From assembly GCA_013416795.1 (NCBI GenBank), contig RQSC01000499.1:1-18717 (forward strand): a stretch of 18,717 bases of DNA, in the 5' to 3' direction. A model generated the notes under the pieces. It made no database searches and was not told the DNA's origin. It was given only the letters and a program-made list of their open reading frames with translations. Shown here piece after piece: positions 4,338 through 17,981 of this stretch. Origin of the DNA: Prasinococcaceae sp. CCMP 1430 (Eukaryota; Plantae; Prasinodermophyta). The translations under genes and the position numbers were made by a program. Each line of letters starts with the position of its first letter. Position 1 is the first letter of the stretch.

Positions 4338-6136
4338 TCAATCGGGTGTGGCAGGGTCCTCCTGCCCGCCACCACCGCTTGCGTCCGCCGGAGCAGCAGG
4401 GGCAGCCGACGGCCGGGGTTGTTGCCCTGCGGCGGCCGCCACCAGGAGCTCGGCTGCTTGGGCCATCGTGCGTTGGAGCGCCTCACGGCGTGTCTCTGCG
4501 GCGGCGGCGCGCGCCTCTGCGGCGGCAGCAGCGTGCTCAGCGGCGGTGGAGCGCTCCGCCGACGCAATTGACGCCTGGTCACATTCGCGCTGACGCGCGG
4601 ACGCTGCACACGCCACACTCTCGGCTGCCTTGCGCTCAGCCATGGCTTCTTCCTTGGCCGCCCTCTCTTCGCGCAGCGCCACCTCGAGCTCCTCGCACCG
4701 GTCCTTGAGTCGTGCCACCGCGCTCGCTCGCGCCTCGGCGCTGCACGCGTGCCGAGCCGCAGCGCGCTTCTCTGCCTCGGCCTCTTCGCGAGCCTCTCGG
4801 GCATCGGCAGTGGCGCGCTCGGCCGTCGAGCTCGCCCGGTCACGTGACGCTTCAGCCTCGGCGCTGGCAGCCTCAGCGCTGGTCCGCGCGGCCTCGGCGG
4901 CGGCCAACGCGATCTGCATCTCGTTCACACGATGCGCCGTCTCGGCAGCGCTGCGCTCCGCCTCGACCTGCGACTCGTGCGCCTGCGCCACCGACGCAAC
5001 CGCGGCGGAAAGGAGTGGTTGGTTTGGTTTGGTTTGGTTTGGGTCAGCTAAGGGGTCGGCGCACAGGGCGCGCGCGCATGAGGGCGGCGCGAGGTCGCGC
5101 GCGCGGTTCAGCCGAGGTCAGCCCATCCCTCGGCGAGATGGACGAAGGTGTCGGCCAGCACGCGCCTGCGCGTCGCGAACAACTTCACCTTGAACGCTGC
5201 TTCCTCTGCCTGATCTGCTCGGTGCTCTGCGTGCTCGGCGCGCTCTGCGGCGTCGCGCGCCTCCGCTCGTGCCGCCTCGAGCGCTGCTTCGAGCACGTTC
5301 GCCCTGCGCTCCGCGCGTGCGGCGAGCGCCTCACAAAGGGCGGCTTCCACCGTGCGATCGCCCGACGCGCGCGCGGCGTCGAGGGCGCTCTCCCCGCCAC
5401 TGCCGCCACCTGCCCGCGTGGCATGCACAGGAGCACGCGGCTCCGCCCCTGCTGCCACGAGCGTGCCGATGGTGTTCCCGCGCCCCCACTTGGCCGCCTC
5501 CCACAGAGCAAGGTCCAGATGCTCTTGCGCGTGAACGCCGCTGACAAGAAGCGCGCGCACCACGTCGCCAACGCCGAGCTTCGCGGCCGACGCGAGCGCG
5601 GTCAGTCCGCGCGCGTCCCCGAGAGCGGCGAGCGCGCTCGAGTCGTCGCCCGCACGCTGGAGCACCTCGCGCACGACGACAGCGGCACCCTCAGGGAAGG
5701 GCGAGAGCGCGGCGGCGTGCAGAGCGCTCTCGCCGAAGGCGCTGCGCGAAAGCGGGTCGGCGCCGGCGCAGAGCAGCACGAGCACTGTCTCGGCGCTTCC
5801 TGCGCGCGCAGCGGCGCAGAGGGCTGGCTCGCCGCCGGCGTCGACGGCATCGGCGGGGGCTGCGCCGGCCTCGAGCAGAGCGAGCACTTGGAGCGTGTCC
5901 CCCGCGGCGGCGCGCTCAACGAGCACGTCGCCGCCGGCGACGGAAACGAAGGTGTCCTCGTCCGAGGCCGGCTCGGACTCCGCAGCTGATGCTGCCAGCG
6001 CGGCGCGTCGGGGCACGGCGCGCGCGCGCCTCAGGAGGTCAGAGATCGTGTCGTCGGAGCTCGTATTGGGACCGTGCTCGGCAGCGGCGACGGTGGCCTC
6101 GGCAGCGGCGGGTGGGGCGGGGCGGCGCCGCGACAT
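4338..6136 (-). CDS. Ankyrin-repeat protein with long C-terminal coiled coil (~530 aa), join(complement 5189..6136, 4338..4982)
   Basis: ATG at 6136 (MSRRRPAP). Ankyrin-like repeats: GEPALCAAARAGSAETVLVLLCAGAD, GESALHAAA, GLTALASAAKLGVGDVVRALLVSG, GESALDAARASGDRTVEAAL. Phase-0 intron 4983..5188 has donor AAG|GTGAAG, CTGAC (plus-strand GTCAG at 5043-5047) and first-AG acceptor GCGCAG|. It joins in frame to the A/E/R-rich coiled-coil ORF 4338..4991. Confidence 0.75.
5021..5040. repeat. (GGTTT)4 pentanucleotide microsatellite inside the ankyrin-gene intron
   Basis: ggtttggtttggtttggttt read directly, preceded by a partial GGTT. On the transcribed strand it reads (AAACC)4 and lies between the branch site and the acceptor. 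Confidence 0.9.
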
Positions 6137-9025: not shown

Positions 9026-11884
9026 TCAAAGCTCCCCGGTGCTCCACGTACGCCCCGCGCCCCACCGCTGTGGCAGCAGGTCACCGCCGCTGTCGGCAGC
9101 ACTCGTGGCAAGCAGCGAAAGCACCTCAGCGAACCGCGCAGAATCGCGTACGCTAACCAGCTTCGCAGCCTTCTGCACATGCCTGAGCCCCGCGCCGCTC
9201 GGCCCTGATTCGCCGATCCCCACTCCCGCCCCGCCCCGCGTGCGCTCGCTCGCTGCGCAGCCCTGAAGCGCCTTGCTTGCGGCCTGCCCCGCCGCTTTGG
9301 CCTCCTTGGTGGTGGTGTTTGCCGCTGAAGCTGCGACCACCGCAATGTGCTCGGCCGCGCAGAGGGAAGGCATCACCACGCGCGCGTCGAACGCCCCCTC
9401 GAGCAACCCCACTTGATCGGAGGTGCCCACTATGAGCAGCCTGCCGGCGCCGGGCTCCGGCCTGTTGGCCGCTTGGATGGCTGCCGCCAACACGCCGCCC
9501 AGGCCGGCGCGCACGTACGTCTCCACCGACTCGATGAGCACAGCGCCCGCCGCCCCACCGCGCCGCGCGCCTCCGAGCCCCTCGGCGAGCGCAGCCGCCG
9601 CCTGGTCGGACGTCAGACCTGTCAGCTGGCTGGCAGGCAGCAGCCCCACGCGCGAGAAGGCACCAGCGTGCTCGAGGAGCGCAGCAGACGCAACTTGCAT
9701 CGCGCCGCTACCCGCGGCGCCCTCGACTGACACAGACAGCGTGAGGGCCTGCCCGTCCGCCTCGGCGAGCATGGCCACGAGCCGCGAGGCCTCGTCCAGC
9801 TGGGCCTCGAACGGCGCGCGGGCGCTCTGCGGGAGCGCCTGCGCTGCCACATAGTCAATGCTCATCACGTGGTCCCCGGCCACGTCCCTCACCGCGCTGC
9901 GCAGGTCCGACATTGTGATGTGAGCGAGCGAGTGCGTCGCGCCGTCCTCGTCGCCATCGGCAGCCTGCCCGCCGTCCGCCTCAGGCATGACGCCGATCCA
10001 CACCGACTCCGCGACCGCCGCGTAGCGCTCGAACGCGCGCGCCGACGCCGCCTTGACTGTCGCCGCGAGGTCCGCGCCAGTGAAGCCAGCGGTCTGCGCA
10101 GCGAGAGCGTCCAGGTCCACGTCAGAGGCGAGCAGCCCGGCGCCGCCCAGCCTGTCGGTGTGCACGGCTAGGATCTCCCTCCGCCCCTCGAGGTCCGGCG
10201 GCGCTACCTCGATCTGCACGTCGAATCGGCCGGAACGCAGCAGCGCGGGGTCTATGAGCTCCCTCCTGTTGGTCGTGCCCACGACGAGCACGTTCGATTG
10301 CGCCTCCAGGCCATCCATCTTTGCGAGCAGCGTCGCCACCGCGCCTTCGTACGGCAGCGCCGCAGCGTCGTTGCCCATGAGACCGCGCGCCTTGAACATC
10401 GAGTCGACCTCGTCAAACACGAGCACGTGCAGCTCGGCGTCGTCGCCGTTCTGCTCGGCGTCTTCCTCGGCGGCGGCGAAGAGCTGGCGGATGCGCGCCT
10501 CGCTCTCGCCCGGCGAGCGGTTGATGAGCTCGGGCCCAGACACGAAAGTGGTGTGGCGCGTGCCCATGAACTTTGCCAGCTGTCTGCTCAGCAGCGTCTT
10601 GCCGGTGCCCGGCGGGCCGTAGAGCAGCAGGCCCTTGACGTGGCCCAGCGCGAAGCCCTCGCGGATGTTCCGTGGCAGCAGGCGGCTCGCCAGCACGCGG
10701 CGCATGATCTCCTGCATGGGGCCGGCGAGGCCGCCGATGCCCAGGCGGCTCGCGTTGAGCTCGGGTCGCAGCGCACCGTCGGCGTACCCGACTGCTTCCT
10801 CGAGGGAGCCGGTGAGCCCGCCGGCCGTCGTCACGAGGACGCGCGCACTGCTGCCTCCGCGCCCAGCTGGCAGGCGGCAGTACAGCAGCGAGTGGGGGGA
10901 CTCGACGTCGTGCGCGACGCCCTTGCAGGCGCGTCCGCCCACGTGTACGGTGGCGCCCTCGTCGCCAAAGTTACGCCCCTCCACCGCCAGGAGCACGCCT
11001 CCGCCGCGCGGACACAGCACGGTGACCGCCGCGTCCGCGTCGCTCGCGTTGCAGCCGCTGACGCGCTCGACCACGGGCGTCGCGTACGACAGACCGCAGC
11101 CGCCGTAGCGCGCGCCACCGGAGCGGATCCACTGCTCTCGCGCGTGCTCCTGCTCCTCGGTGAGCTCCGCCTGCGCGACGCAAGTGCCATGCATGGCCTC
11201 GCCGTTTGGCGGCCGGTGGCTCACGATGACGGGGACGTCGAGGCCCGTGCCCGGAGGCAGCGTGCAAGCGATCTCGCGGTATGCCTGCCGATAGCGCACG
11301 CTGGCGCACTCGCGCCCGCCGACGGTCACGCTTGCGCCATCCAGTCCGAAGTCCTCGCCTTTGATCACTATTGTGGCGCCGCCCGCGCTGGGGCACTCGT
11401 ACGTGTGCCCCGTGCCGTCGCAGCCCGAGATGCCCGTGATCGACGGTCCGGCATACGACAGGCCGGCCTCGAGGGTCACGCGCTCGCCTGACTGCGACAC
11501 GGTGACGTCGAGGCCTGCGCCCACTCCCGGCGGCAGGCGGCACGTCAGCGTGTCGTTGCCTCCGGGCGCGGACGCGCCAATGAAGCTCACGCCAGAGCAC
11601 GGCTTCGTGCCCACGCTCACGCGCGCCTGGGCACCGAACCCGAGTCCATTGACGTGGAGCTGCGTGCCACCAGAGGTCGCGCAGCGGCGCGTCGCTGGTC
11701 CGTCCTTCTCGGGGCATCCGCGAACCGAGAGGATGATCGCGTCGCTGCCTGTCGCCAGCGCGGGCGGGGGCGAGGCGCTCACCAGCAGCACTGCGAGCGA
11801 CGCGGCGATCCACTGCGGCGCGCGCCCCTCCGGGCGCGTTCGCTCTCTCCTTCGTGGTGCAGTCGTCCGGCCAGGGCGCGCCGC
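9026..11884 (-). CDS. NSF/Sec18-family AAA+ ATPase (intact D1, degenerate D2) fused behind a signal-like hydrophobic segment and three IPT/TIG-like repeats; 5' end unresolved
   Basis: D1 follows NSF closely: LGIGGL..MQEIMRRVLASRLLP, HVKGLLLYGPPGTGKTLLSRQLAK, SGPELIN..GESEARIRQLFAAAEED, LHVLVFDEVDSMFKARG, LLAKMDGLEAQSNVLVVGTTNRRELIDPALLRSGRFDVQIEVAPPDLEGRREILAVHT, DVDLDALAAQTAGFTGADL. Upstream are three repeats of the form (P)xI/VxxV/IxGC..C...GG..L/IxV/IxGxxFG...VxVG...C...L/IxCxLPxGxG...VxV...L/VS/GY. The hydrophobic segment WIAASLAVLLVSASPPPALA starts at 11812. There is no credible in-frame ATG just upstream. Confidence 0.88.
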   Translation of the reverse strand, partial: AARPGRTTAPRRRERTRPEGRAPQWIAASLAVLLVSASPPPALATGSDAIILSVRGCPEKDGPATRRCATSGGTQLHVNGLGFGAQARVSVGTKPCSGVSFIGASAPGGNDTLTCRLPPGVGAGLDVTVSQSGERVTLEAGLSYAGPSITGISGCDGTGHTYECPSAGGATIVIKGEDFGLDGASVTVGGRECASVRYRQAYREIACTLPPGTGLDVPVIVSHRPPNGEAMHGTCVAQAELTEEQEHAREQWIRSGGARYGGCGLSYATPVVERVSGCNASDADAAVTVLCPRGGGVLLAVEGRNFGDEGATVHVGGRACKGVAHDVESPHSLLYCRLPAGRGGSSARVLVTTAGGLTGSLEEAVGYADGALRPELNASRLGIGGLAGPMQEIMRRVLASRLLPRNIREGFALGHVKGLLLYGPPGTGKTLLSRQLAKFMGTRHTTFVSGPELINRSPGESEARIRQLFAAAEEDAEQNGDDAELHVLVFDEVDSMFKARGLMGNDAAALPYEGAVATLLAKMDGLEAQSNVLVVGTTNRRELIDPALLRSGRFDVQIEVAPPDLEGRREILAVHTDRLGGAGLLASDVDLDALAAQTAGFTGADLAATVKAASARAFERYAAVAESVWIGVMPEADGGQAADGDEDGATHSLAHITMSDLRSAVRDVAGDHVMSIDYVAAQALPQSARAPFEAQLDEASRLVAMLAEADGQALTLSVSVEGAAGSGAMQVASAALLEHAGAFSRVGLLPASQLTGLTSDQAAAALAEGLGGARRGGAAGAVLIESVETYVRAGLGGVLAAAIQAANRPEPGAGRLLIVGTSDQVGLLEGAFDARVVMPSLCAAEHIAVVAASAANTTTKEAKAAGQAASKALQGCAASERTRGGAGVGIGESGPSGAGLRHVQKAAKLVSVRDSARFAEVLSLLATSAADSGGDLLPQRWGAGRTWSTGEL

Positions 11885-11885
11885 G

Positions 11886-12283
11886 CGCGGCAGCACAGTC
11901 TGCCCACGTCTTATTGTACGCCAGCCGCAGCGCGCCCACCTCGAGCACCACGTTGTCGTCGGACAGGGACTGCTCAACACCACGCACGAAAGTCTCCTTA
12001 ACCTCCGAGAGGAAGAGCGCGTCCTCGTCGTCTGACTCGACATCCGATTCATCCTCGTCGTCGTCGCCGAAACCTGCCCCGCCCTCCTCGTCGCTCGTGT
12101 CGCAGCGCTCCTCGTCGGCGACGTCCACCAAGGAGCGCTGCGGCGGCGGAGCAAGGCTTGCGAAGGCAGCCTCCTGGTCGACCTTCCACAGCAGCCCCCG
12201 CCCCCCAGCCCCCACCTCGCTCGCACTCTCCGTGCCGGCGCTTCCCTGCATGCCGCCGTCATCTACGCCGCCGCCGCCACGTA
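11886..12283 (-). CDS. EIF2B5: Partial translation initiation factor eIF2B epsilon (linker plus start of W2 domain), truncated at both ends
   Basis: EVGAGGRGLLW...acidic linker...DALFLSEVKETFVRGVEQSLSDDNVVLEVGALRLAYNKTWADCAAA matches the recalled eIF2B-epsilon signature F..EV..T..RG.EE....DN..LE(I/V)..L(K/R).AYN....ADC. It is bounded upstream by the N at 12284, and similarity stops abruptly after DCAAA. Confidence 0.8.
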
Positions 12284-12284
12284 N
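12284..12284. other. Single ambiguous base (n), probably an assembly gap or contig join
   Basis: The only N in the window. It sits where the eIF2B-epsilon frame loses similarity and 59 nt before the divergent GTF3C6 start. Confidence 0.6.
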
Positions 12285-16121: not shown

Positions 16122-17648
16122 TCACGCGGCCTTGGCGGCGGTGGCGCGTTGCGGGTTGCCCATCTTGTGGAGGTGCCTGAGGTGGCTCATGATGGCGTCG
16201 CCGGCCCCCGGCAGGCAGCGGTACGGCACGCCGTGGTCCGCGCAGCACTTCGCGATGATGGGCTGGATGCTCGGGTAGTGGAACTGCGAGACGCCCGGCA
16301 GCAGGTGGTGCACGACCTGGTAGTTGAGCCCGCCGGTCATCAGGTAGGTCAGCAGCGAGCCGTGACCGTAGTCCTGCGTGGTGGCCACCTGCTCCTCCGC
16401 CCACTTCCCCCCGACGTGCTTCCCCGTGGCGACGCCGTCGGCGACGTGCGAGCACTGGAAGCAGCTCGCCAGGTACATGCCGCCAAGCCAGTCCGCGGCC
16501 ACGAATTGCAGCGCCACGCGCGCCGGGCTGAAGCCCAGCGCGAGCGGCACGCCGAGCTGCATGGCGAGGAAGGCCGCCTTGCCGCCCCAGAAGGCGAGCC
16601 GGTCGACGGCGCGGGGCGGCCGAAGCCGGCAGGCGCCCTTGAAGCCCGACAGGAAGCAGGCGACGTCCCTGGCGCGCGTCACGAGGCCCATGGCGCCGTA
16701 CAGCGGCACCGCGTACAGCGCCTGGAAGCGGTGAAACCACCGCAGCTGCTGGCCCTCGTGGAAGCGCAGCATCGGCTCGCTGTCCATGTCGTCGTCCACG
16801 CCCGGCACGTTGCAGTACAGGTGGTGCACGAGCAGGTGCTGGTGCTGCCACATGTAGAAGGACGTGCCGTTGATGACGTCGTTGCCCACCACGCCCACCA
16901 CGTGCCACCAGCGCGGATCCTTGCCCAGCGAGCCGTGCGAGGCGTCGTGCAGGACGTGCACGCCGCTCAGCGCGCGCGACACGCCCGCCAGCGCGGCGAA
17001 CGCCACCGCCGCGGCCGCGCTGGGCGCCGACAGGCTGGCGTACATGAAGCCGACGATGAGCGCCACGATGGCCGCCAGCCGCAGGGCCTGCGTGGGACCG
17101 TCGTGCCACTGCTGGCAGTACCGCGACTCGGTCGCGATGTACGAGTGCACGCGCCGCTTCAGGTCGACGTAGAACGGCGTCGCGATGTCGTCGCGGACGT
17201 ACTGGGGGAGCCCCTGGAGGAGGGGGTCGCTTCTGCTGTCGGGAGCGCTTGGGTCCCCTGCCTGGTGGAGAGGGGGAGCTTGAAACGTGCCCACCTCGTA
17301 CTTGGCCAGCAGGGGCTCGACCTTGGCCGTGTTCGGGTGGTAGCTCTCGAAGAGCGCGGTCGCGTCGCGGCCCGCCGCCAGCAGCAGCATGATGCGCCCG
17401 CCCGGGTGCCGCGAGAGAAAGGAGGTCAGGTCGTACACCTTGCCGCGCACGGCGACCTTGAGGGAGCTCGCGGTGTTGTGGCGCTCGAGCTCGGCGAGGG
17501 TGTACACCTGGCTTCTTTGCGCGTGTGGCTGGTCCGGGCCGGGCGGTGACGCGTGTGGTCGCTGCGGCGGTGGGGGGCGAGCGAGCGCGGAGGGAGGCGA
17601 CGCGGCGCAGTTGGGGGGCGGCGAAACGCCCCTGCGGCTACGCAGCAT
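16122..17648 (-). CDS. Front-end fatty acid desaturase with N-terminal cytochrome b5 domain, Delta-5-like (~508 aa; alternative start 17672), intronless
   Basis: Cyt b5 domain YTLAELERHN...KVYDLTSFLSRHPGGRIMLLLAAGRDATALFESYH. His boxes: HDASH, HQHLLVHH and QVVHH (third box begins with Q, diagnostic of front-end desaturases). FWGGKA, QVATTQDY, TGGLNYQ.VHHL.P.VSQ.HYP and HLRHL resemble the Mortierella-type Delta-5 desaturases as I recall them. Confidence 0.93.
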   Translation of the reverse strand: MLRSRRGVSPPPNCAASPPSALARPPPPQRPHASPPGPDQPHAQRSQVYTLAELERHNTASSLKVAVRGKVYDLTSFLSRHPGGRIMLLLAAGRDATALFESYHPNTAKVEPLLAKYEVGTFQAPPLHQAGDPSAPDSRSDPLLQGLPQYVRDDIATPFYVDLKRRVHSYIATESRYCQQWHDGPTQALRLAAIVALIVGFMYASLSAPSAAAAVAFAALAGVSRALSGVHVLHDASHGSLGKDPRWWHVVGVVGNDVINGTSFYMWQHQHLLVHHLYCNVPGVDDDMDSEPMLRFHEGQQLRWFHRFQALYAVPLYGAMGLVTRARDVACFLSGFKGACRLRPPRAVDRLAFWGGKAAFLAMQLGVPLALGFSPARVALQFVAADWLGGMYLASCFQCSHVADGVATGKHVGGKWAEEQVATTQDYGHGSLLTYLMTGGLNYQVVHHLLPGVSQFHYPSIQPIIAKCCADHGVPYRCLPGAGDAIMSHLRHLHKMGNPQRATAAKAA

Positions 17649-17981
17649 GCTCCCTCCCCCCGGGACGCACATGCTTCGTTTTCTTTTGTGCGTGCGTTGG
17701 GTGGTGCGCCGACCTGAGACGGCGGGCTGCGCGCCGTGGTCGGCGCGCGTGCACGCGCGCGCCGGCGGGAGGGGGGGGGGGGCGCTGCGTCGCGTCTGGC
17801 GCGCTCCACGGCCATCCAAAATCGTGACGTGAGGGCGCGCACGCGCGGTGCGCACCACCAACTGACGCGGACGGGGGGTGCGTCGTGGGAACGAGAAGAT
17901 CTTTTCGGTGAGCATTCAAGATATCCGGAAAATCGGGGCCCGCGGCAGGATTTCAAGTCAAAACGAACTGAGCAAAAAAGA

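Follow-up and report, generated by a model that had tools for sequence, protein, structure and literature searches.

A candidate luminal AAA+ ATPase derived from NSF/Sec18, with TIG domains in place of the N-domain, in Prasinoderma coloniale

A stretch of 18,717 nucleotides (nt) of DNA (the window, taken over its whole length; Prasinococcaceae sp. CCMP 1430, assembly GCA_013416795.1, contig RQSC01000499.1) carries on its reverse strand a gene that we read, with modest confidence, as the Prasinoderma coloniale member of an undescribed NSF/Sec18-derived family. In this family an endoplasmic reticulum (ER)-type signal peptide and disulfide-type TIG/IPT domains would replace the N-domain, and the product would be a lumen-located hexamer with D1 as its motor. 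Most members have one TIG domain, Prasinoderma three. The 90% cluster of the window protein includes the P. coloniale protein PRCOL_00004050-RA (EukProt EP00793), together with some 13 near-identical TARA, ENA and Logan proteins.

Domain layout and kinship to NSF

The gene lies in one long open reading frame (ORF) of the window (9026..12262, reverse strand), which is open throughout at a window GC content of 72%. A preliminary description, made from the letters of the DNA alone, had seen in one ORF a hydrophobic segment, three repeats with conserved cysteines, a linker and the ATPase domains D1 and D2, and both the translation and Pfam bear out this order (Table 1). On the translation of 9029-11884, Pfam returned TIG in three stretches (PF01833; E 2.9e-24; 85.3 bits vs. 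a gathering cut-off of 20.9), AAA (E 5.7e-32) and AAA_lid_3. Each TIG repeat (TIG1, TIG2, TIG3) has four cysteines at aligned positions. Moreover, a hydropathy scan (19-residue windows, Kyte-Doolittle score >= 1.6) found no second hydrophobic segment in the window protein beyond the N-terminal one, in agreement with the earlier statement that no transmembrane helix separates the repeats from the ATPase. The three N-glycosylation sequons reported at that stage were an undercount, as the mature protein has five (NDT, NAS, NAS, NRS and NTT), four of which are kept in a sister species (protein P0002, contig L002; 73% identical).

Comparison with structures in the PDB placed the ATPase with NSF: NSF chains align colinearly, in one stretch, over D1 and D2 (query 455-895 vs. 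NSF 264-696, E 1e-57), and Cdc48/p97 aligns to D1 only, twice. The NSF-specific motif of the N-D1 junction, LGIGGL...RRxxASR, is present, and all 50 of the 50 best Foldseek matches to an AlphaFold2 (AF2) model are Sec18/NSF proteins. In this model TIG3, D1 and D2 are confident (predicted local distance difference test, pLDDT, 85-95); the full-length prediction gives TIG1 and TIG2 low confidence, because the underlying alignment had no rows covering them. NSF/Sec18 is a cytosolic AAA+ hexamer that takes SNARE complexes apart in a SNAP-dependent manner. Its N-domain, a double-psi barrel followed by an alpha/beta roll, binds SNAPs, and ATP binding by D2 holds the hexamer together. Pfam detected neither of the N-domain families CDC48_N (PF02359) and CDC48_2 (PF02933) in the window protein; canonical NSFs carry both. 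Cumulatively, PDB alignment, Foldseek and Pfam confirm the earlier assignment: the window protein is a paralogue that derives from NSF and has TIG where NSF has its N-domain.

The description of D1 and D2 as NSF-like stands only in part. Both domains are colinear with those of NSF, and in a motif alignment D1 retains intact Walker A, Walker B, sensor 1 and both arginines in all 17 members of the family introduced below, the window protein included. D2, however, has lost the Walker-A lysine in 17/17 family rows, while 19/20 canonical NSFs keep it, and because of this loss D2 is unlikely to be NSF-like in function. At the D1 pore loop the two Prasinoderma species have NRSPG, where each of the other 15 family members and each of the 20 NSFs has K[FY]VG. 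D1 is the part best conserved between the window protein and its sister-species counterpart (85% identity; other parts 65-76%), which argues that the ATPase is in use, and its polymorphisms among population variants are five synonymous to one non-synonymous.

Some variation was seen beside these motifs. The D1 Walker A is polymorphic, GKT or GKS, in natural populations (TARA alleles P0122, P0124, P0126 and P0134), and some alleles end in TEEL rather than TGEL. A canonical NSF of Tetraselmis (P0306) has a D2 Walker A without lysine (GAGTT), the sole such case among the 20 canonical NSFs aligned. Another protein, P0155 (MMETSP Transcript_34153; 810 aa), is a canonical NSF with a normal N-domain, KYVG and an intact D2 GKS, groups with canonical NSFs on the tree described below, and has a signal-peptide-like start, MFNDKLIRTLLLLVLQTCIACHG; it could be an NSF sent behind the ER in a complex-plastid alga.

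Environmental relatives and phylogeny

The architecture is not a one-off. When a profile of D2 and the tail was run exhaustively against 1.8 billion cluster representatives, followed by an annotated profile search, at least 15 further proteins of the same build were recovered (P0043, P0143, P0145, P0147, P0151, P0152, P0160, P0167, P0175, P0189 and P0296-P0300), with scores of 670-1125 bits as compared with 597 or less for canonical NSFs. Their build comprises a hydrophobic signal-like start, a short variable stretch, one TIG-like domain, a hydrophilic linker, D1 with K[FY]VG, D2 without the Walker-A lysine, and a tail. All are environmental eukaryotic proteins, encoded on contigs of 55-66% GC. 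The preliminary description had counted many annotated homologues against its own reading; homologues there are in number, but none is annotated beyond a generic AAA+ label.

Pfam does not recognise the TIG of the one-TIG members; its homology is based on an alignment (A7) and an AF2 model derived from that alignment. In A7 four cysteines (C13, C26, C55 and C71) are invariant across 19 rows, and TIG3 of the window protein shares 24-40% identity with the N-domains of 15 family members; in these, as in the window protein, this TIG lies directly upstream of the LG(I/V)GGL junction. TIG1 and TIG2 carry the same cysteine pattern as TIG3 and look like internal duplicates. The AF2 model of TIG3 reaches a pLDDT of 94.5, and its best Foldseek match is the IPT domain of plexin A1 (TMq 0.69), with the IPT domains of MET and EBF also among the best. 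The window protein further shares family-specific D1 residues, namely the Y of a Y-D/E-G motif and GRF-E/D-VQ, and the invariant columns of a second alignment (A6) include Y344 and F386. With the TIG region as the sole query, word-based searching retrieved the two Prasinoderma proteins and, beyond these, only TIG arrays of bacterial type, in which the first of the two cysteine pairs (C1-C2) is missing.

In a tree of D1-D2 rooted with Cdc48, canonical NSFs form a clade (Shimodaira-Hasegawa-like approximate likelihood ratio test, SH-aLRT, 98) that excludes Prasinoderma and the one-TIG family, and the one-TIG proteins form a second clade (98). A constraint joining Prasinoderma to the family was not rejected (approximately unbiased, AU, test, p 0.32), and a constraint joining it to the NSFs of the green lineage was rejected (AU p 0.03). 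Based on these tests, the shared architecture and the D2 loss, we file the window gene as a putative divergent member of this undescribed family of NSF paralogues.

Two further observations concern individual relatives. On contig L012 a two-domain Cdc48-like AAA gene (9644-11839) follows the TIG-NSF-like gene on the same strand, 1.1 kb downstream, which may be coincidence. A longer relative that groups with the family, P0301 (1294 aa), has P-loops with lysine after D1 (GEGSDGKS and GPRGSGKT) by pattern matching, outside the motif alignment, and may not share the loss of the D2 lysine.

The 5' end and the side of the membrane

Five TARA contigs (L001 and L007-L010) are collinear with the window over 11.5 kb, between 11891 and 416, with 98-99.6% identity, and upstream of 11891 the window is unrelated to all five. 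There the gene abuts an unrelated acidic ORF cut mid-way, with a single N at 12284, 390 nt off. This acidic ORF has no Pfam match; the idea that it (11892-12206, reverse strand) might be the start of an eIF2B-epsilon W2 domain was dropped, as Pfam gives nothing even at E 5. In the TARA contigs and the PRCOL model an ATG-started peptide, MASRPAKADRPPPAEEAAAL..., sits 86 nt upstream of the break, and this MASRPAKAD... peptide is missing from all six frames of the window. The junction 11891/11892 thus reflects a mis-join or else a genuine rearrangement at the 5' end. Further upstream L001 parts from L007-L009 as well, and the 5' region looks unstable in general. Five independent TARA assemblies, the PRCOL model and the sister species all have the fusion of TIG and ATPase itself, and on this sequence evidence we take the gene and its architecture to be real.

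The hydrophobic segment lies within codons 56-78 of the 983-aa reading frame through which metagenome gene calls run. Among six population sequences, codons 1-55 have 11 variable sites per 165 nt, spread evenly over codon positions, which is a non-coding pattern; codons 56-78 have 0 variable sites in 69 nt; and codons 79-983 have about one variable site per 100 nt, with 24 of 28 polymorphisms at third positions, indicating purifying selection. In the sister species exon 1 (5505-5597) reads MLSRARALVVLLVFFFASLATRCADAGELE, a canonical signal peptide, and ends at a GTACGC donor, and exon 2 starts with AVILSVRGC, which is homologous to DAIILSVRGC of the window protein; the segment is positionally homologous to the sister-species exon 1. 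As it is under constraint, keeps the frame and has a canonical signal-peptide exon as its homologue, we read the segment in P. coloniale as putatively coding. Of the alternative 3' splice sites considered, one would place the MASRP exon in frame near the segment, but the CAG immediately ahead of the segment varies, being CCG in L001 and L010. Four introns interrupt the 5' third of the sister-species gene; the P. coloniale gene has at most one. Gene order differs as well, an ankyrin gene lying upstream of the TIG-AAA gene in L002 and beyond a kinesin gene in P. coloniale.

Several features of the family bear, all of them indirectly, on the side of the membrane on which its members would reside. 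In 15 of the 17 members the N-terminal hydrophobic segment is the only one, and in our own reading of the sequences small residues occupy positions -1 and -3 before the predicted cleavage sites of the relatives. The TIG domains belong to the extracellular type: their second cysteine pair (C3-C4) is that of bacterial surface arrays, plexin and MET, and C1-C2 is specific to the family. In the ATPase part of the one-TIG family, 12 sequons were observed as compared with 36.9 expected, and 9 of 15 proteins have none; in cytosolic NSFs the figures are 81 observed and 97.5 expected, and none of 39 proteins is without one. Such depletion would be expected if selection acted to keep unwanted glycosylation off a luminal enzyme. 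Based on the relatives' signal peptides, the four invariant cysteines, the lack of another membrane segment and the family's sequon depletion, we consider translocation across the ER membrane, and hence a luminal location of the window protein, plausible and slightly to be preferred.

A number of observations weigh against this interpretation. The D1-D2 tree does not by itself join Prasinoderma to the family: the two Prasinoderma proteins form a long branch within a trichotomy at the base. The aromatic residue of the pore loop is gone in Prasinoderma (KYVG to RSPG). The window lacks the gene's own start codon and has no credible ATG ahead of the hydrophobic segment; more generally, the segment stands at the N-terminus of no ATG-started ORF in P. 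coloniale, where one has to go 55 codons upstream to reach the closest ATG in frame, and this ATG varies too, being GTG in L010. The public model PRCOL_00004050 (P0121, 925 aa) splices the segment out as a 174-nt GT..AG intron. Since family members are related, the counts of sequons and signal peptides are not independent, and most starts were set by metagenome gene callers. In the Prasinoderma proteins sequons are in excess (5 observed vs. 2.0 expected, or vs. 1.7 expected with p about 0.02), which would fit a glycosylated protein. Finally, no consistent KDEL-type C-terminus was found when the C-termini of Prasinoderma and its relatives were compared; because the endings vary (GEL in Prasinoderma, TEEL in some TARA alleles, and LDL, KDL, LFL, HW, SSF and VHA in relatives), a retrieval signal of this type was set aside.

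Of the alternatives, a cytosolic TIG-NSF paralogue is the one with most in its favour, and even so we regard it as unlikely. The segment would then be intronic or untranslated in P. coloniale, the protein would start MASRPAKADRPPPAEEAAAL-DAIILSV..., and TIG would be a new adaptor-binding domain. The PRCOL model removes exactly the 58 codons that hold the segment (GTGCGC...GGCAG), its exon 2 starts where that of the sister species does, no ATG adjoins the segment, and nuclear or cytosolic TIG domains exist, EBF being among the fold matches. The absence of variation in the segment, just downstream of a stretch with 11 variable sites, is nevertheless unlike the 3' half of an intron. The segment is also in frame and matches the signal-peptide exon of the sister species, 15 of 17 relatives begin with a hydrophobic segment, and the introns of the two species differ in phase (own reading); the four invariant cysteines per TIG and the family's sequon depletion likewise speak against a cytosolic protein. 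A bipartite chloroplast or thylakoid-lumen presequence specific to P. coloniale, made of a 55-residue Ala/Arg/Pro-rich extension, the hydrophobic core and A-L-A, is the least probable reading. It would account for the 983-aa ORF of the TARA variants, which starts MASRPAKADRPPPAEE...RRRERTRPEGRAPP and continues into a hydrophobic core ending ALA. Between L001 (253-276) and L010 (22-45) the ATG changes to GTG and a new in-frame ATG appears 21 nt upstream (GGCGGC to GGCGAT); this double change looks compensatory, keeping an in-frame start, and such a start therefore seems to matter there. The extension, however, varies like non-coding DNA, without codon-position bias, no twin arginine adjoins the hydrophobic core, and the sister species and one-TIG relatives have a plain N-terminal signal peptide without a presequence.

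Export to the cell surface or wall, where ATP is absent, as a structural or adhesive TIG protein with a vestigial ATPase, seems improbable to us. TIG arrays that bear the C3-C4 pair typically occur in surface proteins (P0139, P0140; plexin, MET), and the inconsistent C-termini, the lost pore-loop aromatic, the degenerate D2 and the five sequons of Prasinoderma would all suit such a fate; but the conservation of D1 between the two species, the D1 motifs intact in all 17 members and the synonymous bias of the D1 polymorphisms are difficult to reconcile with an ATPase never exposed to ATP. That the window copy is an assembly artefact or a 5'-truncated, non-expressed allele is decidedly improbable. 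The break at 11891 from five TARA contigs and the PRCOL model, the abutting ORF cut mid-way, the lack of a credible ATG and the N 390 nt away could all point to it, and with L001 and L007-L009 also differing upstream the region is either hard to assemble or structurally variable. The ORF is nonetheless intact from 11891 to 9026 and 99.6% identical to expressed-looking alleles under purifying selection, and the gene is therefore real whatever the state of the 5' join. On balance we retain the luminal, NSF-derived interpretation. The features of the gene are collected in Table 1. Elsewhere in the window (16122-17915, reverse strand) lies a fusion of cytochrome b5 and fatty-acid desaturase (Pfam E 2e-20 and 5e-29) of ordinary front-end desaturase build.

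Table 1. Positions of the gene's features in the window
Feature	Position	Strand	Basis or remark
Unrelated upstream ORF stretch, outside the gene	11892..12262	-	Break with all other assemblies at 11891/11892
Hydrophobic signal-like segment WIAASLAVLLVSASPPPALA, A-L-A ahead of predicted cleavage site	11753..11812	-	Translation
TIG domain 1, four Cys, NDT sequon	11450..11740	-	Pfam PF01833 and cysteine alignment A7
TIG domain 2, four Cys	11213..11446	-	Best Pfam PF01833 stretch and alignment A7
TIG2-TIG3 insert, 45 residues, predicted helix (AF2), one extra Cys pair	11078..11212	-	Sequence, AF2
TIG domain 3, four invariant Cys, NAS sequon; counterpart of the wider family's single TIG	10781..11077	-	Alignment A7, AF2
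Hydrophilic linker DGALRPELNASR, 12 residues; sequon kept in sister species	10745..10780	-	Sequence
NSF-type D1 ATPase, beginning at LGIGGL...RRxxASR motif	9920..10744	-	Pfam AAA and AAA_lid_3, motif table
D1 Walker A GPPGTGKT	10595-10618	-	Motif table
D1 pore loop NRSPG	10508-10522	-	Motif table
D1 Walker B VFDEVD	10403-10426	-	Motif table
D1 sensor-1 TTNR	10265-10282	-	Motif table
D1 arginines RSGRFD	10220-10237	-	Motif table
Degenerate D2 and C-terminal tail ending GEL	9029..9919	-	Colinear with NSF D2; folded AAA domain, pLDDT about 85-91
D2 Walker A GAAGSGAM (without Lys)	9698-9721	-	Motif table
D2 Walker-B site without Asp	9521-9544	-	Motif table
Stop codon	9026..9028	-	ORF translation

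Proposed mechanism and comparison with known systems

We propose that the N-terminal hydrophobic segment would send the whole polypeptide across the ER membrane, and that an NSF-like double-ring hexamer would assemble in the lumen of the secretory pathway. TIG, in one or several copies on a flexible linker, may bind a substrate or adaptor; D1, with all its ATPase motifs intact, would be the motor; and D2, deprived of its Walker-A lysine, would serve as a nucleotide-independent assembly ring. Most members keep K[FY]VG and therefore probably thread or unfold a luminal protein substrate, while Prasinoderma with its RSPG more likely remodels or holds partners without classical threading. The family might thus represent a eukaryotic, NSF-derived double-ring AAA+ machine acting as a luminal threading unfoldase or remodeller, aimed by TIG and independent of torsins, with Prasinoderma as a three-TIG offshoot with an altered pore loop, a tentative proposal to which we give not quite even credence.

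Torsins, which occupy the perinuclear space as well as the ER lumen, are atypical, weak ATPases, and ER-associated degradation relies on cytosolic Cdc48; we know of no classical substrate-threading AAA+ unfoldase on the luminal side. If our interpretation is correct, a luminal NSF relative with intact motor motifs opens the question of unfolding, disaggregation and complex disassembly in the secretory pathway, and shows how a conserved motor can be redirected by exchanging its N-domain. More than 15 natural variants are available in the family, including a natural lineage without the pore-loop aromatic. A literature search found no published description of a TIG-AAA protein or a signal-peptide NSF paralogue, consistent with the preliminary description's view of the architecture as previously undescribed, and a broad survey of the Cdc48/NSF family does not mention an NSF variant with TIG for the N-domain (PMC5070193). 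Even if the protein were cytosolic, this swap together with a D2 without the ATP-binding lysine would be new relative to that survey (PMC5070193).

The window protein resembles NSF/Sec18 in its tandem D1-D2, the LG(I/V)GGL...RRxxxSR junction, the intact D1 motifs, the colinear alignment and the fold. It differs in having a signal segment and TIG rather than CDC48_N/CDC48_2, in the lost D2 Walker-A lysine, in the RSPG of Prasinoderma and in lying outside the canonical NSF clade; it is predicted to reside in the lumen, a compartment in which neither SNAP nor a SNARE bundle is exposed. With the one-TIG family it shares the domain order, the four TIG cysteines, D2 without lysine, the family-specific D1 residues and a C-terminal tail after D2, although those proteins have one TIG and K[FY]VG and are sequon-depleted, whereas the Prasinoderma protein has three TIGs and RSPG, is sequon-enriched and sits on a very long branch. 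The IPT/TIG domains of plexin, MET and bacterial surface arrays have the same fold and the same C3-C4 pair around a 'C.LP.G.G' motif, found also in P0139 and P0140, but the extra C1-C2 pair ('GC...C') was seen only in the TIG-NSF family. To our knowledge, the TIG of known plexin, MET and surface-array proteins is never joined to an AAA+ ATPase.

Among ATPases of the Cdc48/NSF family, the symbiont-specific Cdc48 (sCdc48) of complex plastids also carries a signal peptide (PMC5070193). Unlike the window protein, sCdc48 keeps its N-domain, has a bipartite signal and ends in the periplastidial compartment, a reduced cytosol; the window protein has no transit-peptide-like stretch after the signal, and the plastid of P. 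coloniale is primary. Torsins are stated to be the sole AAA+ members known from the ER lumen; they possess one AAA domain, in which Walker A is non-canonical and the arginine finger is missing, and need LAP1 or LULL1 (PMC7140721). Torsins and the window protein have in common an AAA+ domain with a signal sequence and an ER lumen that is known for the former and predicted for the latter, but the window protein has two AAA domains, a classical-clade build, a canonical D1 Walker A and the arginines, and torsins matched it in none of the sequence and fold searches. If luminal, the window protein would thus be an invention independent of torsins.

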